The notes below the pieces were generated by a model, which saw only the letters and a program-made list of their open reading frames with translations, ran no database searches and was not told where the DNA came from. This document shows positions 19,529 through 55,674 of a stretch of 64,000 nucleotides of DNA, piece by piece (position 1 is the first letter of the stretch; the number at the start of each line of letters is the position of its first letter). Position numbers and translations under genes: made by a program. Source of the DNA: Takakia lepidozioides (taxonomy: Eukaryota > Plantae > Bryophyta); contig CM060731.1 of the NCBI GenBank assembly GCA_030704615.1, positions 37,696,001-37,760,000 of the forward strand, read 5' to 3'.

Positions 19529-22500
19529 CTACTTTGCGTATGATGGACTGCTCAAACCAAATGTCTCCCCTATATTTTTAATTCCTTTCAAGAATTCCAC
19601 AAGCCACTGCTCAGCAGCCTTCACGTGCCATTGCAGCCTCCTCATTGCACTCAGTCTGCACTTGTTTGAGCGTAGAGCTCCAGTTTCCTGGCAAATATTC
19701 AGCGAGACTTTGAGTGTCAAGTGCTAATGCAGATCCCTTCCCAAAGTTTGGGACCATATCACCAATTCCTGCTGCAATATGGGCACCCACCTTTAGGAGA
19801 AGACTGAAAATCGTGAGACCACCAATGATGAGTGGACGAATCTTCAGCCCATTCACAATCTGAACCTCTGCAACTTTTTGATCGGGGATTACATGGATAC
19901 CATCCCGGTGTTCACACAATAAATGGAGTTGAACAACAGAATGCCCAGGCAGCACGGATATGAGCTTGCGCTACTGGGGGATGCCTTTAGTAGTGAAGAA
20001 AACATTGCAAGGAACTTGCCGTTGTTGCAGCTGTAAGGATAGATTTATGATTGCGTCAAATTTCAGATACAGTTTTTCCTGCAATCTCCTTTCCATGTTT
20101 TCGATAGTGTGTCTCATCACCTCGCACACGTCATTTACAGTTCTTCTTCCAGTCTCCTCGATTTTGTGCTCCAGTTTTTCAGCCAATCTATCCAATTTTG
20201 CTGACAGACTTCTAAAGGAAGTCACAGTGTGCAGAGGGGGTTGAGGTTCAAGTCCGGTTGATTGTGTACCAGCTTCATGCTCACTGACGCATATTTCAGT
20301 TGCCTTGAATATTTGCTGGTCAAAATCAGCATCAAGTTTTCCAAGCTCTAATAGCCGTATGTTGAACAATTTCTCTGTATCCTTTTCACCCAGTAGATCC
20401 ACAGATAAGTCACTGTTGCCCACCCCCAGAATAGTTTGCCTTTCCTGGGCATCATCCACTTGTTCCCAATTATGCACATGTGCCGGGTCTAGGTTTGCTG
20501 CCAGCAACTCTTCTTTTAGTGTCTCCACCAACACTGCTTGGTTCTTTCTGTGTTTGCATAATAGCAACATCTTCACACACTCAGGCCTCAAAATACCTTC
20601 CACAAGTACAACTCCCATGCACTCCTGACGCGAATTACAGAGATCTTGAATTTGACTCACCACATGATTATGGACATGGTTGAGGATATCCGTGTAACTC
20701 AATGATGACTGTACTAAGACATCAATGAAGAGAGGGCCCATCATGTCGCCACTTAACTCCACCAAGATTTCGATGCCACCAAAGATAACTCTTACAAGAT
20801 TTTTCTCGTTCGTGTAGTCTGGAGAGAGCTTCTGCAATTGTTTTAGGAGTCGGTGGAAGTGATTGTGTAGTTTCACCTGCACACTTAGATGAATTCAGAT
20901 TGAGAAGAAGAACGTTGTAGAGACCAACTAAGCACATCCTCAGCTCTTCAGGCTTTGGCAATGTGTACATATGTACAGAGAATCATAGCTCACAAGATCG
21001 CCAGGTGTAATGGGAAAATGAAGAGGGGGCCTTTCTATCATGGGCAATTGGTCAGATCCACATGGTCTCACATGAAGTGGTGTCTTCCACGGCTTCTGCA
21101 AGTATAAGACAACACGTTGAGCAATGTGACTATGTGACAACTCCAAAATGCATGGAAGCAAACATTAAACTCTATAACTATCACTGGTTACCTGAAGCTT
21201 GGGAAAGAAGCCTGGGTCAGAGTGGTCAGGTCTGGATCTCTACATTGTAGTCTCCGACCCACATATAAGGCTTCTGGCGGGCAGTCTACCCACTTCCACT
21301 CCAATCTCCGTTCACCCTTTGAAACATGGTCATCGTAATTTTTCAACGTTGTTGGGATGAACAATCTTGTCGACTGTGATGTCAAGTTAGACTCTCCAGC
21401 AAGTTTTCAGCTCCTAGATTCTCCTCATAGCAAAGGCCTAACTTTAGCATCAGTCCAATGAGACTTGCAGCTTCCACGCCAAGTGGCATCGAACTTGGCC
21501 TTCTGAAGAACTGAAAGACACTTCTGCAAGGACTTTTCAAGGAGAAGCTCTAGTCCTCCCTTGTCTGCAAAACCATTCTCAAAACTTGATTTCAAGTTGC
21601 TTTCCTCCTCAAAGTTCCTCAACTTGATTATTTGACCCATCACCCCCTTACAGAACCAGTGGGGATTCACAACCACAAAATTCTCTAGATCTATCTCTGC
21701 CTCCGGCTCAAAATATATTATTTCACCCACCTCATGTAAATACTTGGCCACTGCATTGCGCACCTTCACAACAGCTTGCAAACTGGGTAGCTGCAAGGTT
21801 GTTATCTTCTTTTGGATGATTTCACAATAAAAAAAATTCATACTGACCATAGGCCGATCAGGATGCTCTTTGTGTCAATTCTGACAAAGCACTACGCATT
21901 TCCACACATGCTTTATAAACCTGTGGCAGCTTTCCAAAGATCTCCGCACATATCTTTATGAACTCTTTGGCCAAAGGTTTGACCTCCCGAGAAGAGTGAG
22001 CATTAACTTGAAACATCATTGGTAACAAATTAACGTAATCGCGGAAATTATTTGATAACATCTGGACATGTTTCCTCACCAATCCTGTGGCATCAAATGG
22101 CTTGTCGAAGTTGGTGAGAACAACAATCACTTGTGGTCGAAGGTCATATGATCTTATTGTGTTTGAGGCGATAAACCTCAACCAATAAGAAAGTTCAATT
22201 TTTATCGCTTCAGATTGTGTGTGTCCCGTCCCGTTTTTCTATCAAATCGGTTGCATAGCAAAAGAAAACAGCAAGGGCTCCCTTTACTGCTTATATCTGG
22301 AATCATGAAATCGTGAAAAGCATGATACTCCTCTTGGCCTGCAAGATCCCAGATCAAAATTTTACTCTCACCATCATCGATAAAAGGTGTAATTTCTATC
22401 CCTCGTGTCCTTGTTGACCATTCATTAGGGTCTGTGATGCAACCCCTGAAAGGCTTGTGGAGCTCAATCACATCCAGCAAGGGACGCACCATTTTCATAC

Positions 22501-25429
22501 CCACATTAGTCAATGTCAAGCTCCGGGCCATTGACCTCCTTAAAGTAGTCTTGCCTGCAAGGCATAGTAATTTCCACAAATGGTTAACTTCAGATTTAGG
22601 GCTGCGTAACTTAGCATCTTCATGTATTCGCATGTAAAATCCAGTATTGATATAAGCTAGAAGCTTAGAAAGTCATGATTGGCATGCAACTCCAGTCTGA
22701 CCCCAGTGAATACGTGGAATTCTCTCTCAAATTCGTTAGCAGGGTCCACCATTCCAACAGCATGCAAAAATTTGTTATTCAACCATGGACACAAGATTTG
22801 TGAAGAACGAAAGTGCCTAGGGAAAGACTATAACCTCAAACAATGAATTGACATCCAACCATCCATTGCTTTCAATTAGCATTAGTCATGTCTACTGTCA
22901 AAGACTGTATCTGACTGATGGTTCCACTCAGTTTTCTACTGGGCAGAGGAAGCTTATTGGTCTATGTTGAATTTTGAAGGCTGGAGGATACACCCTCCAA
23001 ATTGATGTAGAATGGAGGTGCAGTGAGTAAGTCTTCACAAGAGTTTTCAAGCAAGTTGCGTGCACGACACGCGGACTCCCCATCCATTTAGTTACTCACT
23101 CGTCAAGGGCTAACGCACATGCTATCTGAGATAGGTGTGGCAAATGATCACTTGCCTGAAAATGCATCCCCACAGAGGAAGATCCGTGCAGACGTCTCGG
23201 GCTGCGTGACAGGCAGATCCCGCATCACTGACATGTACTCCTGTGCGCTCCTTTTTAATTGGGCTTTGACAGCTTCATGAAAACCTGCACGCTTCAATGG
23301 CGTGCCTCCCAGCTCTATTACTTTCAACCACACGTTGACTTGTAGAAGATCCATGATTGTCGCAAAAACATGATCCCCTGCCACACCATCACACTCTGAC
23401 AGATCAAGCACCTCAAGAGATTGATTGTTGTGGAGAGATTTCAGTATCGTACACACATTCTCTGCCGACATAGAGGATTCACCGTTGATTCGTAGTTCAA
23501 TAAGGGTCCTGTTAGTGCGCAAAGTCTCGGCGATAGATTGTGCCTCGCTTGTTCCTATCTTGTTGCTCACCCCACCGATGTGGAGGTAAGTAGCGAGTTA
23601 TTGGCCTGCACTCCTTCATCATTGGGTATGAGGGGCCTAAGCAAACATTCCATTCCCTTTGGACCCAATGGATTATTCCATAGATCCAGTCGCTCAAGAG
23701 TTGAATTTTCGGTCAACGTTGTCTCAAAGAAAGCAGCTCCATCCTCTCCCAGATTCGAACACTCCATATGTAAATGCCTTATAGTGGAGTTCTTCTTCAA
23801 CATTTCGCATACGAGTTTTGCTCCTTCGTCCCCGCACCCAAGGCGTCACGAATGGTCAATCCCAAGGTCAATTCCTTCAAGACTGTGTTTTCCCCTAGAC
23901 TTTCGCACAATGCATGAAGCTCATCAATCCACCTCCATCGTATTTTCACAATGATCAAGCTCTTGGCGCTCCCGATGGCATGCATGAGTCTAAGACGAAG
24001 GTATATCCTTTCTCGAAATCCTTTCACATCTTCATAGACATTCTCAAAGTCCAGACATGTTAGTTCAGACCCTTTCAGTGCAGAGATCAGCTTGTCAAAA
24101 CTTTCTCGGAATCCTTGCACATGTTCATTCTCCAAGTCCAGAGATGTTAGCTCAGACCCGTTCAGCGCAGAGATCAGCCTGTCAAAACCTTCCATCACCC
24201 GCATATCCAGTCGTTCGACGTCTTGGCCCCAACGCTCATCCCACCAACGCTCATCCAATTTCGAACTGTCATCCAACCCTACATGGTCATCCAATTTCGA
24301 ACTCTCAGCCGAGACCACATGGTCGTCCAGTTTCCAACTCTCATCTGACCCCACATGGTCATCCAATTTCGAACTCTCAGCCGAGACCACATGGTCGTCC
24401 ACACGCTCTTCCAGCTCCGAACTTTCATCCAACTCCGGATTGTCCTGCTGAGTGACAGGCAGCTGCCACATCACTGACATGGCCTCTTGTGCGTTTCTTT
24501 GTAATCGGGCTTTGACAGCTTATCAAGACCGGAATGCAGTGGAGTGCGTTCCAGACGAATTTCCTTCAACCACGGATTAACTTGAAGAAGATCCATGATT
24601 GCTGCAGACACAAGATCCCCTCCCACACCTATACATTTTGAGAGATTGAGCACTTGAAGAGATCGATTGTTGTGGAGAGATTTGAGTATCGTACAAACAA
24701 TGTTCTCTGGCGACAGAGAGGTTTCACTGGGGATTCCGAGTTCGATAAGGGTCCCGTTTGTGCTCAAAGTACGGGCAGTAGATTGTGCCCCGCTTGCTTC
24801 CATCCTGTTGTAAGACCCACCGATCTTGAGGTAAGTAAGCGAGTTATTGGCTTGGACTTCATCATTGGGTGTGAGGGGGTTAAGCAGACACTCCATCCCC
24901 TTTGGGCCCAATGGATTATCCCATAGACTCAGTCGCTCAAGAGTTGAATTTTGAGTCAACATTGTCTCAAAGAATGCAGCTCCATCCGCTCCCACATTTG
25001 AACCCCACATATTTAAATGTCTTATAGTGCAGTTATTCTTCAACATTTCGCATATAACTTCTGCTCCTTCCTCCCCGCAGCCCACCGCATCACTAACAGT
25101 CAGATACTCCAAGACTGTGTTTGTCCACAGACTACTGCACAACGCATGAAGCTCATCAATCTCCATCCATCGTATTTTTGCATTGATCAAGCTCTTGGGC
25201 TCCCGATGGCGCTCATGAGTCTAACACGAAGGTCTTTCCTGTTTCGAAATCCTTTCACATGTTTATAGTCATTCTCCAAATCCAGGTATCTTAGTTGAGA
25301 CCCTTTCAGGGCGGATATTAGCTTTTCAGAACTTTCCATCACCCGCATATCCATCCGCCTGTCCTTTTCCGTATGGTCATCGAACTCCAGAATCCGACTC
25401 CCATTGTCCTCCAAAATATTATCATCCAT
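19529..25429 (-). pseudogene. TRN1-like: TORNADO1-like Roco protein (RI-like LRRs, Roc GTPase, COR, TRN1 C-terminal region) with many frameshifts
   Basis: RI-type LRRs (NSTLERLDLWNNPLGPKG); P-loop IFLCGDAFSG|KTTL; RTRGIEI; IWDLAGQEEYHAFHDFM; VVVNPHWFC; LHLLCEHRDGIH; LLLKVGAHIAAGIGDMVP; AAEQWLVEFL. Roughly ten frame breaks; intron 22555-23155. Confidence 0.9.
24250..24430 (-). repeat. 36-bp (12-aa) tandem repeat inside the Roco gene
   Basis: DDHVVSAESSKL / DDHVGSDESWKL / DDHVVSAESSKL / DDHVGLDDSSKL. Confidence 0.85.
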
Positions 25430-37056: not shown

Positions 37057-39668
37057 CTACAATGGTCTATCAGGGATACCACGGTATCCCTTCAACTTAT
37101 TGGCATTGACTCTACCAAACATCTCTTTGTTAATGGTTTGTAACATAGCTGTGTTATTATCATACATCTTCTGTATGACATAAGGTCTTTTCGATGGTGA
37201 TTTAAGCTTAGAAGCTTTAATCTTTCCTTTCTTCTGCAACCATAGTACCAAATCACCTGTCTTAAGAGTCTTCAATTTACCTTCATCAAACTGATCCTTC
37301 CTCTTCATCTGAATTCTGGTCATATTATCTACTGCATCAGCACGTACTTCTTCCACATGATATAGTTCATGTTTCCTTACTTAAATTGAATCCTCCAATT
37401 CCATTCTCCTTCCCCATTCAGTTCTCATAGTAGGTAATAAGAACTCCACTGGAAGTAAAGCTTCCATGCCATAAACTAATTGGAATGGTGTATACTTGGT
37501 AGTGACCTTATATGAAGTCATATATGACCACAAAGCTGTCAACAAGTTTGTATCCCAATCTGTCATGTTCGCATTGACTATCTTAGCAAAGATAGTGCAT
37601 AGTATTTTGTTGGTGGCCTCTGCCTGCCCATTGCCCTGTGGGTAATAGGTTGTACTCTTCCGGTGCACAATCATGAACTCCTTAGTCAATAGTTCAATGG
37701 TCTCATTAATGAAATGACTTCCCTGGGGGGGGGGGGGGGGTGCTAGTCCGTGAGCGGCTCACGTGAACGGAAAGATGCGTGAGCGGGAAAATGCCAATCC
37801 GTGAGCGGAAAGATACTCACGTAATAGGGTGTATGGGCCTACAATCGCGGATGAGGAAGCCCCAGGAGACCTATTTCCGCGGGAATGAGTGTACATATCA
37901 TGCGTACTTGGATGAAAGATGGATGAATAATTCATGAATGGTTGAATGCGAGATGGCTGATGGATAGACATATGCTTTGCAATGCATGAACAATGGATAA
38001 GTGGATGGTTAAAGACTGGATGTATTATCGAGGGTCATCGCTCAGGTGCTTCCCCGGAATGAGGATATAGTAGATGTTCCTGAACCATACATTCAGAAAA
38101 CACAGATGCAGCAGGTGCTTGTTAATTCCCATTAAACCCCCTTGTAATCAATGTCGCGTTGATGCAAGGTTGATCCCTGAACTTCCCAAAAGACTAGAAG
38201 ACACGAAACACTAAGCAAGACAAAGATTTATTTCCCGAAAGAGGCGATTGAAATCCATAGCATGATCAAGGTTGCATTAACGCAACCTTGATTGTGTCCC
38301 ATACAAAATGCAACATTTCTCAAATCAAGGTTGCGTCAACGCAACGTTGTTTTGCATCCTGCGACTTCATTTTTTATTTATTTATTTATTTATTTTTAGG
38401 AAAAATGATGCTTTCATTTCTCAAATCAACCTTGCGTCAATGCAAGGTTGATTTGCCCATACAAAATGCAAAAAACAGTGCAAAAAGGATGCTTTTATTT
38501 CTCAAATCAAGGTTGCGTCAACGCAAGGTTGATTTGCATCCTGCGACTTCAATTGTTTTTTTTGTTTTTTTTGTTTTTTTGGGAAAAAAGATGCTTTCAT
38601 TCCTCAAACCAACCTTGCGTCAACGCAAGGTTGATTTGCATCCCGCGTTGTTTGTTTGTTTTATTTTATTTTATTTTTATTTTTATTCAGAAAAAAAATG
38701 CTTTCATTTCTCAAATCAACCTTGCGTTGACGTAAGGTTGATTTACATGACCAAAAAATAAAACAAAAAAAACAACGCAAAAAAAAAAAATTCGCGGGAT
38801 GCAAATCAACCCTGCATTGACGCAACCTTGATTTGAGAAATAAAAGCATTTTTTTTCAAAATAATAAAATAAAATACCGTAATCATCCAGTTCCACTCGG
38901 AAATCAACCTCGCGTTGATACAAGGTTGATTTCAAGTCCTCGGAAATCAACCTCGTGTTGACACAAGGTTGATTTCAAGTTCTCCGAAATTAACCTCGTC
39001 ATCCATGCTTCATTCATCCATCTTTTGTCATCCTGCATTCATCCTACATTCATCCATTCCACATAGCCATTAATCCTTAAGAATTTCGCCACACATTTCT
39101 CTCAAATTGAACTCGACGTCTTAGGTCCCAGGCATCGTATGTTACCCTCCGTTCCACTCAACATTGCCCCCACGACAATAGGTCCTGCTTTTCCCACGGC
39201 TATAGGCTCCGCTTCCCTTATGTGCTCACACTTAAGAAATCTGCTTACGCTTAAGAGATCTGCTCACGCTTATCAAAATCTGCTCACGCTTAGTGCGCTA
39301 AGCGTGAGCGCGCTCACACGCTAGCTTCCCTCCTTCCCTGGTCACTGAAATATCAAAGGAGTGTACAGCCAAATCTTGTGAGAATGTTCTCATATAATAA
39401 CCTTGCTGTGGACTTAGCTGTGTTGTCCCTCAAAGCCTCAGCTTCCACCCATTTTGTGGTATAATCAGTGGCTGTGATTATATACTTGTTCTGTGTATTC
39501 TAGGTTGGTGGATTAATTGGTCCAACAAAGTCTAATCCCCATTTCTGGAATGGTTCAGTAGGCATCGTAGGATGCAAAGCCATCTTCCCAGATCTTTTGC
39601 AAAGGTCCTAGCCTCTGACACTCGTCATAACTCTTGCAATACTTGTGTACATCTCTAAACAAAGTATA
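37057..39668 (-). mobile_element. Ty3/Gypsy integrase remnant split by a MULE insertion
   Basis: [45 protein letters not shown]|SHF, STTYYPQGNGQAEATNK, TPFQLVYG. Confidence 0.85.
37727..39332. mobile_element. Non-autonomous Mutator-like (MULE) element with internal palindrome array
   Basis: 9-bp TSD cttccctgg (37718-37726, 39333-39341); removing the insert restores integrase SDQGSHF; G-initiated imperfect TIRs (gctagtccgtgagcggctcacg / cgtgagcgcgctcacacgctagc). Confidence 0.8.
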
Positions 39669-39715
39669 CAGTTATTTCACATTGAGAGGAATTCATTAAT
39701 TGTAGCTTCTTGCAT

Positions 39716-41170
39716 CTACTTTCGCTCTGGTGCATACAGTTCAGGGCTAACATACACAGTCACCTCCCATCCATTGTTACGATATTGGCACCCAATGTGG
39801 GTGTGCATGCCAACTCGATCCTGCAGTGACCGATGAGCACAGAGTGATTGAACTGATCTTAAGTAACAATTTGCTTCCACTTCCATGTTTTTCGATTTCA
39901 GAAACCGAGTCACCTTGGTCACTATGTCCATATCACTTGCATAGTAGTGCTCCACTCGAAGATAGAATTTTGCTGTTGGCTCACTTGAGCTTGCTCTGAA
40001 GTCGTAGTAAACTAGAACATCATTTTCGCGTTTACGATCTGTGTTTGCATCAGTCGTGAATACTTTCCAGATTTCACGAGAGAATTTGTGATCAACGTCT
40101 TTGGAAATGGCACCGCCCAGTGTGAGATGTTGTACCAGCAGATCTTCGTGATCGATTGCAAAATGAGTGTAAACCTTCATCCTTGGCCCAACTGATGGGT
40201 CTTCACAATCAATTCCTATAAAACTGACCCTACGGCTGACATTTTCTGGCAGCACATTAAGGTATGTTGTCACCTTTCTCCATGGCAATTCCAATCCAAT
40301 GGCACGACATGCATTAGTTACCAGCTCCTGGCGGCCTACCCCATGGAGTATGCACTTTGCATCTATTCCTCTCATGTAGCACTTCAGCCTAGGTAACACA
40401 ACGTTGAAATCGAAAGCAAAGAAGAACTGCGACATCCTCGTTGCGTATCCAGGACCAACAATGAGAACAGAACGAAGACGCCAAAACCACTCCAATGACA
40501 CCCCTGGAATCACTTGCTCCATGAGCACTGCGAATTGAGTTGGGAAGGAAGATGTGATTTCGAAGTTGGACTTTGATGCAGCAATGGGAAACGGATCAAT
40601 AGTAAACCGCACAGTGGTCTGTGCAGCAGAGAGGTTTAGACTAAAACAAAGAGGTGACCAATCATTTGTTAAGGGGCACGGCCATTGAGCATTGCCAGTG
40701 GCGTCTGGCTGGGGTCCCAAAGCGATTGCAATATATTTGTCAAAGAAGTATGAGTACCTCTTCACATTCTCCTCAGAATATTGGGCTATCTCCAGGAGCT
40801 GCCGGAAATGATTGCCCGCAACGCCTCTCCAGTAATGTGCAGCTTCCGTGGAAGTTTGTGCCACCGGGTCGTACACGAGGTCTGAGAGTTCTGGGTTGCG
40901 GATCTTGGTGAGATTCATGTACACAGGGGCCTGAGCACTAAATCCCCACTCGTCAAACTCCCACCCTCCATCAGCAGAGAAGATCGGGCGGCTGTTGCCC
41001 AGATTACCTAGTGCCCCTAGCTTTCTGGTATCCTTAAGTGAACAGAGTCTCCAATGATTTGGCATCTTACTCTTGGTGCTTTGAGTATCCGGTAATTGAT
41101 AGCTCAAATCCCCCATATTGACAGTCTTGAATACCTCCTTTAGCCATGGCAGAGTTGATAATGACTCCAT
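39716..41170 (-). CDS. DMATS-superfamily (ABBA-fold) aromatic prenyltransferase, fungal type, 484 aa, intact
   Basis: Ordered DMATS motifs: YW..AG..F..LL..A.Y, LGP.P, LT.D.SP..FSLN, VRFTIDP, GVSLEWF, FFAFDF, LKCY, IDCEDP..RMKVY, LTLGG, YYDF, PTAKFY, HR.L, VTVYVSPELY. Uninterrupted ORF. Confidence 0.92.
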   Translation of the reverse strand: MESLSTLPWLKEVFKTVNMGDLSYQLPDTQSTKSKMPNHWRLCSLKDTRKLGALGNLGNSRPIFSADGGWEFDEWGFSAQAPVYMNLTKIRNPELSDLVYDPVAQTSTEAAHYWRGVAGNHFRQLLEIAQYSEENVKRYSYFFDKYIAIALGPQPDATGNAQWPCPLTNDWSPLCFSLNLSAAQTTVRFTIDPFPIAASKSNFEITSSFPTQFAVLMEQVIPGVSLEWFWRLRSVLIVGPGYATRMSQFFFAFDFNVVLPRLKCYMRGIDAKCILHGVGRQELVTNACRAIGLELPWRKVTTYLNVLPENVSRRVSFIGIDCEDPSVGPRMKVYTHFAIDHEDLLVQHLTLGGAISKDVDHKFSREIWKVFTTDANTDRKRENDVLVYYDFRASSSEPTAKFYLRVEHYYASDMDIVTKVTRFLKSKNMEVEANCYLRSVQSLCAHRSLQDRVGMHTHIGCQYRNNGWEVTVYVSPELYAPERK

Positions 41171-41964
41171 TTAATGCCAACCTGCATGTGGAGGTGAGTC
41201 AGAATAAGATAGAACTGCGGTTTCATATTTGTCAGAGAGCCATGGCCCTCCACATGAAAAAGATCGATGGACGTGATTCATGCAATATGAAGCTAGAAGA
41301 AATGTTACATATTTCGGCCACATTCTAGCTTATGTTGCCTAGGCCATAGTTTATCACAAGTCACAACATGATTTAGGCATCTGGAACCGTAAAGAGATAC
41401 ATCTATGCAACATCATCTATGCACTGGAACTAGAGTGCTACATTCCGATTGCAAGAACCCGGTCACAAACACTAGGAACACATTAGCCCTCAAAATCAGA
41501 TATAACAAAAAAATACACATGAAAAACTTACACTTGTCTTGGTCTTTGAAACAAAATCAACACTGCTCACATAAACTCTGTGGATCTCAAGCAGGTTGAT
41601 ATGAGCACCACAATAGAGTCAATAGATTGCTGAAAATGAGCACTCGTATGAAGGTGGAAACTTAAAATAGAAATCGTCGCTCTCAAAGATGCAGCTCGGA
41701 ATCACCTTAGTCACTCCTACAGTAACATGGTAAATGCAAGAAGTTTCAATACGTAGAATCATGTGAAACTTCAAAAGTTGGTGGACGGTGGACCGCCATT
41801 AGTGATGGTCACAAAGTCTTTTCTAATTAAGAGATAAATTGGGATCCGGTTTCGTTTTATTTTAATTTACAAAACTGACAAACGCCATGGCTGGCGGTCC
41901 CAATTACATTTCAATTTTCTTAAAAAAATCTGGACCGCCAAGGTTGGTGGTCCCAATTTTTAAT

Positions 41965-42235
41965 CGGACTGTATTTGTTTGGAAGTATATGGATCTCCGA
42001 GATGTTCCCCCAAAGATTTGTCAATACCACATTGTCTTGGAGAACGGAGCACTCCTAGTACGACAATGTCAACATTGATTGAATCCGAAATATTCCTTGT
42101 TGGTAAATGAAGAACTTGATAAATTGTTTGCACCTGATTTTATTTATCAATATTCCCGTTTGTGACTGGGTTTCGACAATTGTTGTCGTTCCCAAGAAAT
42201 TGTCTAGGAAAGTGCGGATTTGCCTTAATGCCTAT
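41965..42235 (+). mobile_element. Ty3/Gypsy RT N-terminal fragment
   Basis: VFVWKYMDLRDVPPKICQYHI..LNPKYSLLVNEELDKL..WVSTIVVVPKK..KVRIC with stop and frameshift. Confidence 0.75.
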
Positions 42236-43678
42236 GAGAAGTTGCAGCCACGTCCAACGCAATGCCAAGTGGATTTTGGAAAAGATCTGTAGCAATATTG
42301 TATCACGAAATCACTGACGTCTTTCGGGAGATTCAAGAAATTGGGACGTTAGAAGGTGTACAGTAGCAGTACATGAATTCTTTCATCAAAATAGACTACA
42401 CAAAAAAGCAATTAACGCCTCACAGAAATATTAAAGGACAGACTCGCAAGCAGCCAATATTTACAATGTCACTGCCATAAGCATCAAGCAACACAGTAGA
42501 ATAATGTGACTTCCTACGTCGAGCAAGTGCATGCAGAACCCAAATGCACTATATCAGGCATCGAGTATCCATCAAAATCCATTGACATTCGCTCCCTTCC
42601 ATTTTGTTTTATCATGGAAATAGATGTGAGGAAATAATGAATGGACTAAGCACATCTTTCTTTTTTAGTCATCTTGACCAACTTCCTTGCATTGTAACAG
42701 TTCATTTTGCAAGATGGAGAGTCGGGGCTGCACACGTCACGTCACGCCACGTCAGGTTACGTCACACCTAACACAGATGTAACAGGGTAGAATCTAGAAG
42801 GTTCTAGATGGAGGAGGAAAGTTCCCTACAAGTTTCCAAAATAACTAGGAAAGTTCATAGAAAGTTTGACTTAAGGAAGTTTGACTTGAGGCTCTCAAGT
42901 CAAACCTATAAGATATTTATATTATGGAGAGTAGGTCAAATGTTTGATAAAGTCATATTGTGGAGAATATGTCAAACCTAATAAGGTTGACTTTAAGAAA
43001 TTTTAAAATAATATATAAAACACTATTTTAACTAATTCTGGACTTTTGTTTGGTCTAGAAATAATATGAGAAATATGAATAAATAAAATTTATTATTGAA
43101 ATAAAGCGATATATATGATTATTTTGGTTATTTTATGCACAATATAACCATGAACAATAATCCTCCAAACATTTTTTGGAGACAATATAAGTATGTATTG
43201 TGGTTTTAGAAGAACATCCACTGCCAAGTTGACGTTCACGAAAAAAAATGGGAGAATGCAATAAATTACACCGTGATGTGAGGTCAGATATGTAAAATTT
43301 TTTGCACAAAATGGTTGCCATATCAGATGACATACAAAACCAAACATAGAACAATCGTGGCATGCGATGAAGAGGATGACATGAAAGAATGTGTCCACAT
43401 ACATTGATGATAAACATTCATATTTTATTAGAGATAGCAACTTTGACGTTGCAGTCAGACATAATGTAACGTCAACTGTACATCCGTTGGACTTAATGTT
43501 ATACAGCGGCTTCAAGCCATACAACGGCTTACACTAACCCATTAATATTACAGAGCCTCCTCCCAAACGGCTCGCAGTCAAGGCATGTGTTCGAAGACGC
43601 CTCCGGTTACCACAACCACTTGCAACGGTCTCTACACCAGAGGAAACGGAAATACTTTCGGAGAAATCGAACCTTGTA

Positions 43679-46600
43679 TGTCGCGCACCTCACTTCGGTA
43701 AGCTGGCTGCTCATCGGGACATAACGGTCTCCATTTGCTCCTCCAAAAGACCCTCCACCAATTTGGGCCTAGTGGAAATTCCCTTTGGTAGATGGCAGTC
43801 CGGAATAGCTCCCCACTCCTTGGTCGCTTTCCGGCTCGTTCGTTTTCTCACTCACTCACTAGTTTTTGGTCACCAACGGGCTTGCACCGTTCTCGGGGTT
43901 ACTACTCCCTATATATACTTCTGTGACTGTCCGTGGGGGTTTCACAAACAACACCATCCTTTTATGGCGAACCACCACGAAGACCCTCGACTCCCGGTGA
44001 TGAGTCGCGGTGAGTCTTGGCCCACCCACCACGGCCCCATTGGACCGTGATGAGTCCCAAGACTCCCTACGACTCCCACCACAAGGTCTCCGCCCCATGG
44101 TGAGTCTTATGCCACCCCCACTAAGACCCACCAAGCTACCACCACCCCTCGTGGAACCACCCCCACCGCAACCCGTTGTGTGGGGCTCCACCTAGTGAGC
44201 ACCTCCGCCTCCGCCTCCTTGAGTGCCTTGGGCACTCAAGGGTGTTTCAGCCCCCGTACCTATTGTTGCCACTGCCCCCACCACAGGGGCAGCCCCTCTT
44301 GTGCCTCGACCCCCCGCCCTCAAGACAAATGGCCGCGACACACACCCCTACTAACAGGGAGTCGATGTCCTCATCGACTTGTCCATTTTGTAGAAACGAA
44401 CATCCAAGTTGTGGCGTCCCACATCAAGGAGTTTGTTCCCGTACCATGGCGTCCCATGGCAAAGAACCAAAGCCCCACTTGACTCTATTCTCCACTAGCT
44501 AGTTCGGCCGACTTCCTCCAAGTCCCGGCCAAGGGTGGAGCCTCTCAAGCTCCTCCCAGTGCACTCTTCTTGGCCCACTTCAAGGCCAAGGAACGATCCT
44601 CCCCGAGGATCGAATCGCCTTACTACAAGTAGCTTACTACAAGGCAACCCCCTCAGTAGCGCAGTTATAGTACGCGCACGCGCCAGGTGCGCACTAGCAC
44701 GTGAACTCCCAAAAAAGGCGCAAGTTTCCTTGCCCCTTGGATGGGAGTCACCCGATCGGCACCAGAGGTGCTTTTCCATAGACCAATACGAAAAGGAAAA
44801 CTCCCGTTGCGGAGTATTTTGTGTTATTATAACAGAACTCTACTGCATCCAAGTGCTCCACCCAGTCCGATTGGTCTGCCGACACGTAATTCCACAAGAT
44901 CTGCTTCACCACGGAATTCACCCTTTCCATTTGGCCGTCCGTCGTAGGTCGGAAGGCGGTGCTCATCTTGAGCCTCGTCCCCATGTTCTTCCAAAGTGTC
45001 CTCTAAAATTTACTTGTAAACTTTGGATCGCGGTCCGAGACAATATCCTTCGGGAGTCCATGATGCTTGAAGATGTGGCGAAGTAAAGTCGCCCCGTCTC
45101 CTGCGCCGTTGCGGTTTCTTTGGTGGGGATGAAATGGCCCATTTTACTGAACCTATCCACCACCACCATGATTGCATCGAATCCTTTCCACAGCGGCATA
45201 GCAGTCATGAAATCCATTGAGACACTTTCCCAAGACCCCTCTGGAATCGGCAGGGGTTGTACCAGCCCCGCTTGCTTTTTGTACTCGCTCCGGTTTTGTT
45301 GGCATGTGGTGCATGTCTTGACATACTCCTCGGCCTCCTCCCTCAGTTTGGGCTAGAAGTACTCTTTCTTCAAGAGTGCCACGGTGCGCTTGGCTCCGCC
45401 GTGGCCCGCAAGCGGGCCATTGTGACATTCCCTCAGGAGACTATCTCTGATCCCTCCTTTCGGCACGTAGATACGCTTTTGCTTGTACCGAAGCAGTCCA
45501 TTTGCAAGTGGAACTGCGATTTAACCCCCATCCTCAAGTCCCGCATCACGGACTTCGCCATCTCATCCTTCCGGTAAGCCTTCCGGATCTTGCTTTGGAG
45601 CGCCGTCTCGCCCCTGTACACCAACATGAGCTGCTGCTTTCTACTTAAAGCATCGGCCACCACATTGTCTCGTCCCGGTTTATACTAGATATCTACGTCG
45701 AACACTGCCAAAGTGTCTTGTCATCTAAGTTATTTTGGGGACAGCTTGGGCTGCGTGGCAAAATACTTCATCGTGACATTGTCTGTGAACATCTTCACCG
45801 GGTTGGAACCAACATAGTGGCGCCAAAGCTCAAAGCAATGCACTATCGCCTTCATTTATTTCTTGTGCGTAGGCCACCGTCGCTCCACTTCATTCAGTTT
45901 CTTACTTTCGTAAGCCACTGGACCACTGGACGTCCATCCTGCATGAGTACACCCCCAATTGCGAAATCCGATGCATCTGTATGAATCTCAAATGGACGGT
46001 CGAACTTCGGGATTTTGAGGACTGGAGCTTCCGCCATCCGCTGCTTCAACTCGGCAAAAGCTTGGCTACAAAAAGTCATATCTTGGATTTACACAGAAGG
46101 TCTGACAACGGCCCCGCGATCTTGGCGAAATTTCTCACATATTTTCGGTAATATAGGAGGCGAGTCCTAGGAAGGATCGCACTCCCGGGACCGAAGTCGG
46201 AGGCTCCTAGTCCAAGATCGCCCTCACATTTCTATCATCCATTTTGATCCCATCCCGTGTAATCACATGTCCTAGGAACTCCACTTTTGTGACCCCGAGT
46301 TTGCACTTTGAAGCTTTGGCATACAGCTTCCCTTCCCGCAATTTCTGCCACACCCTTTTTAGGTGCTCCAGGTGCTCTAACTTTGTTTTCGAGTACACCA
46401 AGATGTCGTCGATGTACACGATCACAAAGTCATCCAACCACTCCTGACAAAGGCTGTTCATTAGCATACTAAAGGTTGCGGGTGCGTTGGTGAGCCCAAA
46501 AGGCATCACCAAGAACTCATATGAACCATATCTTGTCCTGCACGCGGTCTTCTCCTCATCTCCTTCCGCCACTCGGATTTGATGGTAGCCGGAGCGCAAA

Positions 46601-49471
46601 TCGATCCGGCTGAAATACTTCGCTCCTGCCAACCGATCGAAGAGGTCGTCGATCCTTGGCAAAGGGTACTGGTTCTTGATAGTCATCTTATTCAGAGCCC
46701 TGTAATCGACATACATCCGCAGCGTCCCATCTTTCTTATCAGCGAATAGCACCGGGGCTCCGTAAGGTGACTTACTCGGCCGGATGTACCCCTTTGACAT
46801 TAGATCCTTGAGCTGAGTCTTCAGCTCGACCAACTCTCTGTGGCTCAACCGGTAGGGCACCTTGGCAGGCGGCTCCGATCCCGGTATCACCTCAATCTTG
46901 TGGTCCACTCCTCTTCGTAGTGGCAAGCCGCTTGGTAAATCCTCCGGCATCACATTATGGTATTTCTCTGAGATCTCTTTGATCCAATCTGGGCTCGGCT
47001 CCCTATCGCCTTTTCCCTCCACTTGTCTTACGTAAAGCAAATGCCAAAAATTGGGGCTCGTGCGGCTCCTCCACGGCCCACTTCTTTGCTGACAGCAGGT
47101 TTATTCGCCCTCCCACTGGGTTGGGCGTTTCCGACACTCGTAAAACTTCACCACCATTCCCACATGGTAGCGTGACTACTCTCTTGCGGCCATTTATGAC
47201 CGCTCCTGATTTGCTCAAAAATGTCATCCCCAAAATGAGATCCACTCCATCGATCTCGCAAATGGTGAAGTTCTCACGTCCCTCCCAACTCCCCAGCTGA
47301 AGAGGAACATCGAACGCCAACCTCGTCGTCAATTGTGGAATAGAGGCCTCCACACCACTTGTCGGGAGCCCCAGTTTTCGTGCCGTTGCCAGTGTCATGA
47401 AGGAGTGCGACGCTCCTGTGTCCACCAACAACGACATATTAGTTCCGAAAATTATCCCACTCACGAACAGTAACTGACTCCCTTGACGCAGGGGGCCAGT
47501 TTCCTGATACAACTCACAAGAGTAGTTGCCTACCTTGCAAGTCTTGGCAACCACCGCTTCCACCAAGCGGCTGATGGAATCTTCGGACAGCTCCGTGGTT
47601 GCCCGAGTCATGTTCAATTGTCAGGGTTTCGTACACTTCTTGGCCATGTGCCCGGGCTCCCCGCAATTAAAGCACACCCTATCGAAGGTCGCCTTCTGTC
47701 CACCATAAGCCGGCGCACCTGATTTTCTTTTCGGAGCACCGGGTGTCGCCTTGACGTATGAAGGCCCTCCCTTCGATTTCCATGTGTCATTGTCGCCGCG
47801 TGGCCTATCCCACTTCTTTTCCGGTCGGAAGGAGTCACCCTCCCGCCGAGTCTTCTTGTGGTTCAGCTCCGTACGGCCTTGTCTTTCGCCCCTAGGGACA
47901 TCCGAGAAACATTCAGCCCTTTCAATTGCCTCGTTCAAAGTCTTAGGTGGCTTCTCCTCCAACTTCCGCCTGGCCCATGGGGCTAGTCCCACCACAAAGT
48001 TGAAGACCATTTATGGTTCCGCCATATCCGCGACTTCGAGCAACATCACAAGGAAAGACTAAACATATCCCCGAATGTCATCCATTTGCTTCAAGTTCCT
48101 TATCTTGTCCCGGGCGAGCCAGGACGCATTGAGAGGAGCAAACTGTCTTTTCATAAGTTCCTTGAACCCACTCCAGTCCAAGGTTTCCGGGTTTGGACCT
48201 CGGTCATGAAGGCGTTTTTGCCACCATTGTTGAACATAGCCCCTCAAATGGGTGGGAGCCACTTCCACCCAATCCTCGTCACTCAACTTGGCCACCCGGA
48301 AATACTGCTCCAGCTCCAAGAGCCAGGTGTTGAGTGCCTTCCGATTTCGGACGCCCTCGAAGGAGCCGGGTTCCTTATGCTTCATCTTAAACTTTGCCTT
48401 AGTGGAAGTGGCATTAGCCGCCTTCAACACGTCTTTCAACGTCCCACCAAATTGCGCCAACACCCCTTCCCAAAAAGCTGCTGGCATGGGAGACATCTGT
48501 TGGTCTGGCGGAGCCTCCAGGAGGACCTCGGGCTCCGACTCCCCAGATTCATCCCGTTCTTGCGCGGCCTCGCTTTCAAAAGCATGCATCGCCTCCTCAA
48601 ATTGCCGCTTCGGTGACACGTCGCCCCCATCGGGCTCACTAGGATCATCATCTTTCGGGCCATTCCGCTTTCGCTTTGCCTTGCCCGACCCCATGATGAG
48701 GCTGATCTCAAGGACGATCGCGTACTGAACTCTAAGCTCTGATACCAAGTGTCGTGCACCTCACTTCGGTAAGCTCCCCTTCAAGTCATAGTTACTCGCC
48801 TAACTCCCAAACTGGCCGTCAGGCCAACTCGGAGCTTCGGCTACTCACCGGGACATAAAGGTCCCCCTTTGCTCCTCCAAAAGACCCTCCACCAATTTGG
48901 GCCTAGTGGAAATTCCCTTTGGTAGATGGCAGTCCGGAATAGCTCCCCACTCCTTGGTCGCTTTCCGGCTCGTTCGTTCGCTCGCTCACTCACTCACTAG
49001 TTTTTGGTCACCAAAGGGCTTGCACCGTTCTCGGGGTTACTACTCCCTATATATACTTCTGTGACTGTCCGCGGGGGTTTCACAAACAACACCATCCTTT
49101 TATGGCGAACCACCACGAAGACCCTCGACTCCCGGTGATGAGTCGCGGTGAGTCTTGGCCTACCCACCACGGCCCCATTGGACCGTGATGAGTCCCAAGA
49201 CTCCCCACGACTCCCACCACAAGATCTCCGCCCCATGGTGAGTCCTATGCCACCCCCACTAAGACCCACTGAGCTACCACCACCCCTCGTGGAACCACCC
49301 CACCGCAACTCGGCGTGTGGGGCTCCACCTAGTGAGCGCCTCCGCCTCCTTGAGTGCCTTGGGCACTCAAGGGTGCTTCAGCCCCCGTACCTATTGTTGC
49401 CACTGCCCCCACCACAAGGGCAGCCCCTCTTGTGTCCCGACCTCTCGCCCTCAAGGCAAAAGGCCGCGACA
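43679..49471 (-). mobile_element. Ty3/Gypsy LTR retrotransposon with two LTRs (5' LTR 48750-49471; 3' LTR 43679-44340), degenerate gag-PR-RT-RH-INT
   Basis: TG..CA LTRs; PBS tggtatcagagc (tRNA-Met); gag zinc knuckle CFNCGEPGHMAKKC; protease LVDTGASHSF; [11 protein letters not shown]; RNase H TDASDFAIGGVL; integrase MDFMTAMP..VVVDRFSK..TDGQMERVN. Confidence 0.95.
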
Positions 49472-49799
49472 CAGTAGTAACATTATCATCCGAAATGTTA
49501 CTTGGAACTCTACTTGTTGAATCTCTTGATGCCCTTGAAGCCTGCCGGGAAGCCCCGCATTTTTGCCAATCACGAAGCTCTTCTTCTACTTTTTGAATTC
49601 GCTCCTTGAATGTGACTGGGCAAAACAATTTTTCATATGACAAATGTCAGCTGAAATGTCGAACATTTGTAGAAAAAATGATAAAGTAAAAGTGCAAGTG
49701 GAAGACACTTTCAAGATCAAATTCTCCATAAACAACAAACAGTGGGATAAGTACACACCAAGATAATCAGGTTCCTTTTGTTGTGATAGGTTTTAGGCT

Positions 49800-54052: not shown

Positions 54053-55674
54053 TTACTGGGCTCCTTCAGAGACCTCCAATGGTGGGCTTGGCTTGGACTT
54101 TCTTTTTCTTTTTCTTTGTCTCTTTGGTTTGATTTGGACTTCTGTTTCCGTCTCAGTGAGCCCCTTGGGAACGTCCTTCGTGGTTCTTCCTTCACTTGGT
54201 CCTGGTTGTCCTGCTGCTTGGACTGCGCCGCCATGTCCAAATTCCACAGTTGCTGCTGGTGTAGCATGTGACTCTCCTCCCAATTGCTCCTGTTGCATGC
54301 CAGCGTTAGCTAGCTCGTTGTAATACACGATATTCGTACCAACGCTTTGTTCAAAAATTATGTAACATATCTGTCCGATCCAATGATCCTAAGGCTGAAC
54401 CCGCGTGGTGGGATGAATTCTACCTAGGAATAGGAACAAAAGTGTCCTAGTTCCGGCAATGTATACGCTAGGGCGAGGTACAAGAGTTCGAGGTACAAGT
54501 GTTCAAAGAAATTCGTACTTACTGCTTGATTGATTTGTTCATGGTCATAGTTGATTGCGTGGGGTTGGTCTTGTCCCATCAGCGAGAGTTGCTGTAACTC
54601 GTCTGCCAGTCCACCATTCGCATAAACAGGATCAGAACCCGTAAACATGGGCGGTTCGCACCAGGTTAATATGGGTGATACTGCGCGTTCCAGAGGATGG
54701 GCTTGCCCCATCAGCGAGAGTTGCTCTAACTCGTCTGCCAGTCCACCATTCGAATAAACAGGATCAGAACCCGTAAACATGGGCGGTTCGCACCAGGTTA
54801 ATATAGGTGATACTGCGCGTTCCAGAGGATGGTCTTGCCCCATCAGCGAGAGTTGCTGTAACTCGGCTGCCAGTCCACGATTCGCATAAACAGGATCAGA
54901 ATTTCGACTTGTACACATTGGCGGTTCGCACCAGATAGGTGCAGGAGGATATGGATGGTTGGGAGGAACGTAGCCAGTCTGATTTAAGGATGCTGGGCGT
55001 TCCAGAGGATGGTGTTGCCCCATCAGCGAGAGTGGGCGTTCCAGAGGATGCGCTTGCCCCATCAGTGAGAGTAGCTGTAACTCGTATGCCAGTCCGTGAT
55101 TCGCATAAATAGGATCAGAATTTCGCCTCGTAAACATGGGCGGTTCGCACCAGGTTAATATACGTGCAGGAGGATATGGATGGTTGGGAGGAACGTAGCC
55201 AGTCTGATTTAAGGATGCTGGGCGTTCCAGAGGATGGTGTTGCCCCATCAGCGAGAGTGGGCGTTCCAGAGGATGGGCTTGCCCCATCAGCGAGAGTTGC
55301 TGTAACTCGTATGCCAGTCCGCGATTCGCATAAACAGGATCAGAATTTCGCCTCGTAAACATGAGCGGTTCGCACCAGGTTAATATAGGTGCAGGAGGAT
55401 ATGGATGGTTGGGAGGAACGTAGCCAGTCTGATTTAAGGCCGATACTGCGCGTTCCATCGGAGGATGGTCTTGCCCCATCAGCGAGAGTTGCTGTAACTC
55501 GTCTGCCAGTCCACGATTCGCATAAACAGGATCAGAAAATGGATAATAACGTTGACTGCTAGGGCGACAATACGGACAATACGGACATAACGACAATACG
55601 GACACTCGGTGCCTCGATTGGAATAGCCTTGCTGGAAATACCGACATGATACGTCTTCATGATCCTGGTCCATC
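54053..55674 (-). CDS. Tandem-repeat protein with degenerate N-terminal CCCH-like finger and basic NLS-like tail; two exons, frameshift near the 5' end (possible pseudogene)
   Basis: CRYFQQGYSNRGTECPYC; six copies of SDP(V/I)Y(A/S)N.GLA.EL(Q/E).LSLMGQ; phase-0 GT-AG intron 54371-54522 joins to an exon ending KPKRQRKRKRKSK..GAQ*. Confidence 0.6.

Follow-up and report, generated by a model that had tools for sequence, protein, structure and literature searches.

A fungal-type DMATS gene with a preserved donor site and a changed acceptor side in a chromosome assembly of Takakia lepidozioides

The 64,000-bp stretch of the bryophyte Takakia lepidozioides analysed here (hereafter the window; GenBank assembly GCA_030704615.1, contig CM060731.1, positions 37,696,001 to 37,760,000) carries on its reverse strand a 484-codon open reading frame (ORF) that encodes a homologue of the fungal DMATS aromatic prenyltransferases. 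Soluble ABBA/DMATS enzymes, which have value as biocatalysts, occur in fungi and bacteria; to our knowledge, all plant aromatic prenyltransferases characterised so far are membrane-bound UbiA enzymes. We believe that an intronless DMATS gene of a rare basidiomycete-type subclade passed from a fungus into the plant, where it has a host-like composition and has been kept open by selection, with its donor site intact and its acceptor site remodelled. We give this account a probability of roughly 0.55.

Results

The reading frame encodes a DMATS-family protein with an ABBA fold

The reading frame starts with an ATG, has an in-frame TAA directly upstream of it, and ends with a stop codon at 39716-39718. 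An intact ORF of 484 codons had originally been predicted here, and its limits proved exact. Base shuffling of the ORF left no frame open in 20,000 trials, and the probability of 484 open codons at the ORF's composition is ~2e-12. The parts of the gene discussed below are as follows (strand in brackets).

39716..41170 (-): coding sequence, single exon, of a 484-aa DMATS-family (ABBA) homologue (ORF, Pfam, TIGR03429)
39719..40873 (-): ABBA barrel, residues 100-484 (AlphaFold2, Foldseek)
40874..41170 (-): N-terminal extension, residues 1-99, without family match (profile search, model)
40646..40648 (-): TGT codon of Cys175, at the catalytic Glu column, FgaPT2 E89 (alignments)
41182..41531 (-): putative intron in the 5' untranslated region (UTR), from sequence only

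The encoded protein matched the Pfam profile PF11991 (Trp_DMAT) with an E-value of 1e-50; its score of 173.6 bits exceeds the cut-off of 25, and the alignment covers positions 3-356 of the 357 in the profile. This search upheld the fungal-type DMATS identity assigned in the original prediction. The protein also passed the NCBIfam model of the DMATS family, TIGR03429 (201.2 bits, cut-off 163.85), and failed the tryptophan-DMAT equivalog TIGR03430 (45.3 bits, cut-off 740.75). Trp_DMAT was the sole Pfam match at E-values up to 1, with no match to the UbiA membrane domain, and the translation lacks the (N/D)DxxD metal motif.

An AlphaFold2 model built on 56 sequences (mean predicted local distance difference test score, pLDDT, 82) is a globular barrel, which predicts a soluble protein. 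It has ten antiparallel beta-strands in five alpha-beta-beta-alpha units over residues ~100-484, with pLDDT above 90 over most of 110-484. The top Foldseek matches of this model were DMATS1, AnaPT, FunA, AtaPT, FgaPT2, CdpNPT and FtmPT1 (E-values 1e-23 to 1e-18), with target-normalised template-modelling scores of ~0.8 against DMATS1, AnaPT and FgaPT2. The ORF is thus a genuine member of the DMATS/ABBA family. Residues 18-97 are predicted to be disordered in the model; N-terminal extensions of 50-90 residues are also found in fungal relatives. No stop interrupts the 84 codons before Met85, which has a probability of ~0.01 by chance. The donor of the putative 5'-UTR intron is GTAAGT, at 41531; its AG acceptor, with a pyrimidine-rich tract, is at 41183-41182, 11 nt before the ATG.

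The gene nests among fungal sequences with basidiomycete members

An exhaustive phmmer search of 1.84 billion cluster representatives gave 356 matches, the best two being 35% and 34% identical to the ORF protein. A word-indexed protein search gave no scoring match, and an exact-sequence look-up returned no record of the protein. Of 30 match clusters looked up, 16 carry organism names, and all 16 are fungal; they include Basidiomycota (Rhodocollybia, Ceraceosorus, Mycena, Crassisporium, Sparassis, Exidia) and Ascomycota (Agyrium, Botrytis, Bipolaris, Microthyrium, Pleomassaria, Lophiostoma, Paramyrothecium). The nearest ESM Atlas clusters are fungal as well. No plant homologue was recognised among the 356 matches, some of which remain unnamed; plant genome DNA was not searched. 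We found no plant or bryophyte DMATS in the searchable literature, which includes a 2025 review listing functional horizontal gene transfers into plants. One match, P0008 (Mycena sanguinolenta KAF7371204.1), is annotated as a Pyr-redox-2 domain-containing protein of 949 aa, of which residues 16-375 form a complete DMATS domain; this could reflect a natural fusion, or gene models that were merged.

In an unrooted IQ-TREE phylogeny (LG+C20+F+G4, 38 rows), the plant gene fell in a seven-row clade with an ultrafast bootstrap of 100 and a Shimodaira-Hasegawa-like approximate likelihood ratio test value of 98. Its clade-mates are a Rhodocollybia protein, two Ceraceosorus proteins, and three unnamed proteins from one Logan run and two ENA metagenomes. 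Within this clade, the member P0004 branches outside the plant gene (96/86), and the remaining five form the sister group of the plant gene (98/94). A quick tree of 56 rows agrees with this placement. The terminal branch of the plant gene is long (1.56, compared to a median of 0.82). Each unnamed clade-mate is an uninterrupted ORF, and the contigs look fungal, with split glycosidase genes or a P450 gene nearby. Because clade-mates are uninterrupted as well, the lack of introns in the plant gene needs no special explanation. We considered a bacterial DMATS outgroup as a root; the short matches suspected of being bacterial lie in fungal-looking clusters with P450 and split polyketide synthase genes, and the tree was left unrooted.

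The donor site is preserved and the acceptor side is changed

We aligned the protein with 134 relatives and counted residue conservation by column. The diphosphate-binding basic residues (R188, K263, R330, K332 and K401) are all present, at columns that are 96-98% conserved, and they match R100, K187, R257, K259 and the Q343/K position of FgaPT2. The tyrosine shield (Y265, Y334, Y403, Y473 and Y479) is present too. Each of the columns of R188, K263, Y265, R330, K332, Y334, K401 and Y403 is 93-99% conserved; that of Y473 has Tyr in 98 of the 134 relatives and a gap in 29, and is invariant among the rows of the 56-row alignment. All nine of these diphosphate and shield columns are kept. The motifs on which the family call had originally been based do fall on near-invariant positions: VRF on R188, LKCY on K263 and Y265, RMKVY on R330, K332 and Y334, AKFY on K401 and Y403, and TVY..ELY on Y473 and Y479. 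Since the diphosphate pocket and the tyrosine shield are complete, the protein should still bind and ionise a prenyl diphosphate, and by its residues it probably does.

The acceptor side is different. At the column of the catalytic Glu, which is E89 in FgaPT2, E104 in AuraA and E91 in AtaPT, 126 of the 134 relatives have Glu, five Asp, two Gln and none Cys; the plant gene has Cys175. This pairing recurred in two phmmer alignments (to 9iia and 8day) and in two MAFFT alignments, one of them of 56 rows. The TGT codon is at least two changes away from any Glu codon, and it sits inside a short-read unitig with no differences. In characterised enzymes this residue (Glu89) touches the indole NH or an amino group of the substrate, and it is lacking only in some indole-diterpene and naphthacenedione prenyltransferases (PMC11443524). 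Replacing the corresponding residue of AuraA (E104A and E104Q) lowered efficiency more than 1000-fold (PMC11696170).

Compared with five clade-mates, the plant gene has nine replacements of its own: S165C, D169N, E175C, E192D, D203F, N206T, R336H, G384D and P405R. The family consensus residue is present in all five at S165, D169, Glu175, E192, D203, N206, R336 and P405, eight of the nine positions; at the ninth, G384, it is present in four and P0004 has Ala. Seven of the nine replacements, E175C included, were counted in the strands and loop that surround the Glu (residues 165-206), where the positions listed above number six. Over the 22 columns that are at least 85% conserved, the plant gene deviates at seven, compared to a family mean of 1.15, and only 3 of the 134 relatives are equally deviant. 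The original prediction had credited the ORF with the full ordered motif set. That description holds for the diphosphate and tyrosine-shield site; it does not hold for the catalytic Glu, which is Cys175, nor for eight more near-invariant residues.

Neutral drift rarely leaves the frame open

We simulated neutral substitution of the ORF (transition:transversion ratio 2:1, no indels) and stopped each run once changes had reached 7 of the 22 near-invariant codons. Reaching this point took a mean of 0.17 substitutions per site and introduced a mean of 7.5 stop codons, and the frame was still open in 4 of 1500 runs. This indicates that the deviations arose while the frame was maintained. The changes spare the donor site and gather on the acceptor side, which on the alignment appears to fit a functional shift better than decay. 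Some of them may already have arisen before the transfer, in a donor lineage that was not sampled. The open frame and the simulation thus point to purifying selection, which had been claimed at the outset; the claim was overstated in that this evidence is not a dN/dS estimate.

The ORF lies in single-copy DNA of host-like composition

Four DNA runs of one sample hold 74-79% of the sequence words of 38200-43200. In short-read unitigs of these data, 39992-42802 is a single unitig of 2811 bp with no differences from the assembly and a flat depth of 30.1 in run X1 and 66.6 in run X3; it spans codons 1-393 and 1.6 kb upstream at single-copy depth. On both sides of the single-copy block the depth climbs to 1e3-6e5. 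Because other genomic copies of the downstream Gypsy integrase part from the window at 39666, the unique block can be placed at 39667 to ~42780:

39667..42780 (no strand): single-copy block, with the ORF, ~50 bp of 3' flank and ~1.6 kb of non-coding sequence upstream (GC 0.40) (unitig depth)

Unique variants of the adjoining repeats have depths of 24-47 in X1, compared to 30 for the ORF block, and the depth ratio between the two libraries is the same for the block and for these adjacent variants. The unitig ends enter the host repeats by up to k-1 bases with no differences. As this extension is limited to k-1 bases, the unitigs are consistent with the assembly and do not bridge it independently.

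Run X6, which comes from another sample and study under the same species label, contains two low-depth pieces of the ORF that are 98-99% identical to it, a 169-bp contig at 40043-40211 with three differences and a 217-bp contig at 40890-41106 with two. It has no contig in the 1.6-kb non-coding part of the block. In a further, unrelated run, X5 (a plant metagenome), the flanking repeats are present at depths of tens to hundreds, too shallow to show single-copy DNA, so that the absence of the ORF there is uninformative.

The base composition of the ORF is that of the host. Its GC content (0.468) and its observed/expected (o/e) CpG ratio (0.58) lie at the 62nd and 47th percentiles of host windows of 1455 bp, for which the median CpG o/e is 0.60 ± 0.16. 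In three clade-mate coding sequences, by comparison, CpG o/e ranges from 0.86 to 1.04 and the GC content is 0.29 or 0.57. We regard composition as the strongest independent argument against contamination. A tblastx comparison of 34-46 kb with three clade-mate contigs matched the ORF and no other fungal-like coding sequence, and thus no co-transferred fungal neighbours, a weak test given three loci. Elsewhere in the window, an ORF at 19971-20882 has only land plants as named relatives, Diphasiastrum complanatum (52%) and Sphagnum fallax (39%), and there is a match to LRR_14, a leucine-rich repeat profile of plant NLR type.

The 3' end of the ORF has a second version in the short reads

The short reads departed from single-copy behaviour at one end of the gene:

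39741..40030 (-): 3' segment of the ORF, codons 381-477, about twofold in short reads, with a junction 40030-to-39741 (unitig depth)

Unitigs covered this segment at ~2.4 times the single-copy depth. Two versions of 39784-39893 occurred at equal depth, with zero and four differences from the window; the second copy of the segment is ~4% diverged. At 39917-39918 the sole unitig version has TT where the window has GG, a missense difference (Thr418 to Lys). A head-to-tail junction from 40030 to 39741 was present at single-copy depth, and no second copy of the segment was found within the 64-kb window. Two readings fit the depth. One is a diverged 290-bp tandem duplication at the locus that was collapsed in the assembly; the other is a permuted partial copy elsewhere in the genome. 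If the duplication is at the locus, the frame would shift past codon 477, and the last seven residues, including Y479, would be lost or replaced.

The gene is flanked by retroelements

The flanks of the ORF hold degraded Gypsy and Copia retroelements and a long interspersed nuclear element (LINE). Gypsy and Copia neighbours had been reported in the original prediction and were found; the Mutator-like element (MULE) reported with them was not found among the scanned ORFs of at least 130 aa, and shorter fragments were not searched. Two Gypsy copies are listed below.

37060..39666 (-): 5'-truncated, degraded Gypsy integrase fragment, beginning ~50 bp past the ORF stop (profile, repeat comparison, unitigs)
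43705..49473 (-): GC-rich long terminal repeat (LTR) Gypsy element with gag, protease and reverse transcriptase, LTRs 94-96% identical, separate from the ORF block (profile, self-comparison)

The integrase fragment is broken at 38300-38950 by tandem repeats of ~100 bp. This inserted array consists of direct and inverted copies that are 70-89% alike; in each unit a T-rich tract follows a short palindrome-like core (GCGTCAACGCAA), and parts of the array occur at high copy number in the genome reads. The integrase segment 39369-39702 has a summed unitig depth of 6e4-6e5 compared to 30-67 for single-copy DNA, so this Gypsy family must have thousands of copies; the family also occurs in run X5. An unclassified repeat lies at 42780-43700, upstream of the unique block. 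The LTR Gypsy element has ~4.5 kb between its LTRs and no integrase match among the scanned ORFs, and on these grounds it may be an internally deleted copy.

We considered two ways in which a transposon might have brought or received the gene. As transposon cargo, the 3.1-kb block would be bracketed by repeats, but no LTR pair or terminal repeats flank it, the repeat at 42650-43760 is unlike the downstream Gypsy, and the block is single-copy. Insertion of the ORF within a Gypsy element is opposed by the lack of reverse transcriptase or RNase H coding sequence at 41171-43750. With no bracketing repeats and no retroelement coding sequence upstream, the gene is neither visible transposon cargo nor a simple insertion.

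Other features of the window lie apart from the gene. Pieces of a ROCO-like gene occupy 19971-25190 on the reverse strand: LRR_6 at 24471-25190, a weak COR-A match at 21425-21850, and the 303-aa C-terminal ORF at 19971-20882 mentioned above, which also has many unnamed metagenome relatives of ~490 aa. A 407-aa open frame at 54424-55647 (reverse strand) is made of about six tandem copies of a unit of 60-70 residues without a Pfam match, in which SDPVYANRGLA..ELQQLSLMGQ..HPLER and YVPPNHPYPPAP recur. An Rfam scan of the whole window gave no match.

Discussion

Taken together, the tree, the base composition and the read depth are best read as horizontal transfer from a fungus, as originally proposed. 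The donor would have been a fungus carrying the rare intronless subclade also found in Rhodocollybia and Ceraceosorus. During a long residence the gene would have taken on the base composition and CpG depletion of the host, while selection kept its frame open. The barrel, with its full pocket, should still bind and ionise dimethylallyl diphosphate (DMAPP) or a longer prenyl diphosphate. Its acceptor side, in contrast, appears to have been remodelled in the plant lineage alone, by the change of Glu to Cys175 and the eight others. Most probably the enzyme would prenylate another acceptor, for instance a phenolic or a bulky hydrophobic compound, for which the Glu is dispensable, or else it would work far less efficiently.

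Several observations weigh against this account. The loss of Glu and the eight other lineage-specific changes at near-invariant sites are also what relaxed constraint would produce. The locus is gene-poor and rich in transposons, and its CpG depletion suggests methylation. Because only ~50 bp separate the stop codon from the truncated Gypsy fragment, the 3' UTR and polyadenylation signals would have to be transposon-derived. The junction in the short reads is consistent with a 290-bp tandem duplication at the 3' end of the ORF, and 290 is not a multiple of three. The contig pattern of X6 would fit a transcript, but the type of that run is a guess, and two pieces of DNA would both fall in the ORF with a chance of ~0.2. 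There is no orthologue or paralogue at least 50% identical among the 1.84 billion cluster representatives, which makes dN/dS impossible. Finally, the Logan unitigs reach at most 30 bp (k-1) into the repeats, and long-range linkage rests on the assembly.

The strongest competitor, though doubtful, is a relic: a transferred gene that has fallen silent, lacks expression or catalysis, and has just not been disrupted so far. It would account for a Cys in place of the catalytic Glu and for replacements at positions that the clade-mates keep, for a number of changed near-invariant columns that only three relatives reach, for the transposon-rich, CpG-depleted surroundings, and for a possible frame-shifting duplication. 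Neither an orthologue in the protein searches nor firm RNA evidence in the reads speaks for a working gene. What a relic explains poorly is the frame itself: 484 codons remain open (P ~2e-12), the 84 codons of the N-terminal extension are open too, and drift sufficient to produce the observed changes leaves a stop-free frame in 0.3% of simulations even when indels are not counted. The nine diphosphate and tyrosine-shield residues are intact while the changes lie on the acceptor side, a distribution that looks directional and not random.

If the remodelled gene is functional, it may have gone further and been domesticated as an ABBA prenyltransferase with a rebuilt acceptor pocket that prenylates a phenolic, a bibenzyl or another non-indole metabolite of the plant. 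This extension is speculative, and we hold it somewhat less probable than the relic.

A competent canonical DMATS that prenylates tryptophan, indoles or tyrosine and so supplies the plant with prenylated indoles is a much poorer fit. The fold and the donor site are complete, and the best sequence matches in the PDB are enzymes that prenylate amino acids (histidine for FunA/GliD1, Trp and Tyr for DMATS1). On the acceptor side, the Glu that hydrogen-bonds the indole NH or amino group is a Cys found in none of the 134 relatives, its neighbours S165, D169, D203 and N206 have changed too, and a mutation of the corresponding Glu in AuraA costs more than 1000-fold (PMC11696170). The score against TIGR03430 (45 bits, cut-off 741) points the same way. 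The route to prenylated tryptophan or indoles suggested in the original prediction is unlikely on the strength of Cys175, the eight changed near-invariant residues and this profile failure, and, judged by its residues, the protein is probably not an ordinary tryptophan/indole prenyltransferase.

We regard a contaminant, or a chimeric assembly that linked plant repeats to DNA of a fungus such as an endophyte, as very improbable. Such an artefact would be suggested by exclusively fungal named relatives, by the absence of the gene from protein collections under this host, and by a block bounded by repeats at both ends, where assemblers err and where the unitigs fail to bridge. Yet the GC content and CpG o/e of the ORF are at the median of host windows and far from those of the fungal clade-mates, its depth equals that of adjacent single-copy repeat variants at the same library ratio, and the unitig ends run into host repeats, as far as k-1 bases allow, with no differences. 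Pieces of the ORF occur in an independent sample from another study, the block and its flanks hold no other fungal coding sequence in the three-contig comparison, and at 35% best identity no sequenced fungus matches the gene.

Vertical inheritance of an ancient plant family lost almost everywhere, for which the long terminal branch and the unrooted tree leave some room, is scarcely credible given that no plant homologue was recognised among the 356 matches, that no plant DMATS was found described in the literature, and that the gene nests, with P0004 outside it, in a clade whose named members are basidiomycetes.

If the rebuilt enzyme does prenylate a plant metabolite, as in the speculative extension above, it would provide the first soluble, metal-independent route of aromatic prenylation in plants, and its catalytic arrangement would have no counterpart among 134 relatives. 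A DMATS fixed in a plant would add a second class, after the microbial-type terpene synthases, of fungal specialised-metabolism genes in non-seed plants. The change of Glu to Cys beside an untouched donor site would be a natural experiment on acceptor specificity, or on Glu-free catalysis, in the ABBA fold. Even if silent, the gene would be a dated example of foreign DNA that landed and persisted in transposon-rich plant DNA.

Comparison with known systems

The plant protein shares with FgaPT2, DMATS1, AnaPT, AtaPT, FunA and AuraA the Pfam and TIGR03429 family and the ten-strand ABBA barrel. Like the fungal DMATS enzymes it has no (N/D)DxxD motif, the same set of diphosphate-binding Arg and Lys residues, and the same tyrosine shield. 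It differs from them in its plant host, in an identity of 17-21% to solved structures, in Cys175 and the changed acceptor-side residues, and in a predicted disordered N-terminal extension of ~100 residues.

Its nearest relatives, at 31-35% identity, are the basidiomycete subclade formed by Rhodocollybia butyracea KAF9078537.1, Ceraceosorus guamensis, C. bombacis and three metagenome or Logan proteins. The plant gene and this subclade are intronless single ORFs, and they have Leu or Ile in place of the family Trp at position 178. The coding sequences of the subclade are not CpG-depleted, unlike that of the plant gene. We found no biochemical characterisation of any member. The only described DMATS groups with another residue at Glu89 are the indole-diterpene and naphthacenedione enzymes, in which the difference has been attributed to large substrates (PMC11443524). 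These groups are examples of DMATS enzymes that function without the Glu. Because the nearest relatives of the plant gene all have Glu, its loss in the plant gene is independent.

The nearest precedent for the transfer is provided by the microbial terpene synthase-like (MTPSL) genes of non-seed plants, which encode specialised-metabolism enzymes of fungi or bacteria that were transferred into bryophytes, lycophytes and ferns and then used (PMC12448838). They belong to a different enzyme family and are multi-copy, widespread and expressed, whereas the plant DMATS gene is single-copy and no orthologue of it was found. The plant UbiA aromatic prenyltransferases catalyse the same class of reaction as DMATS enzymes, but they are membrane-bound, Mg-dependent proteins of an unrelated fold.

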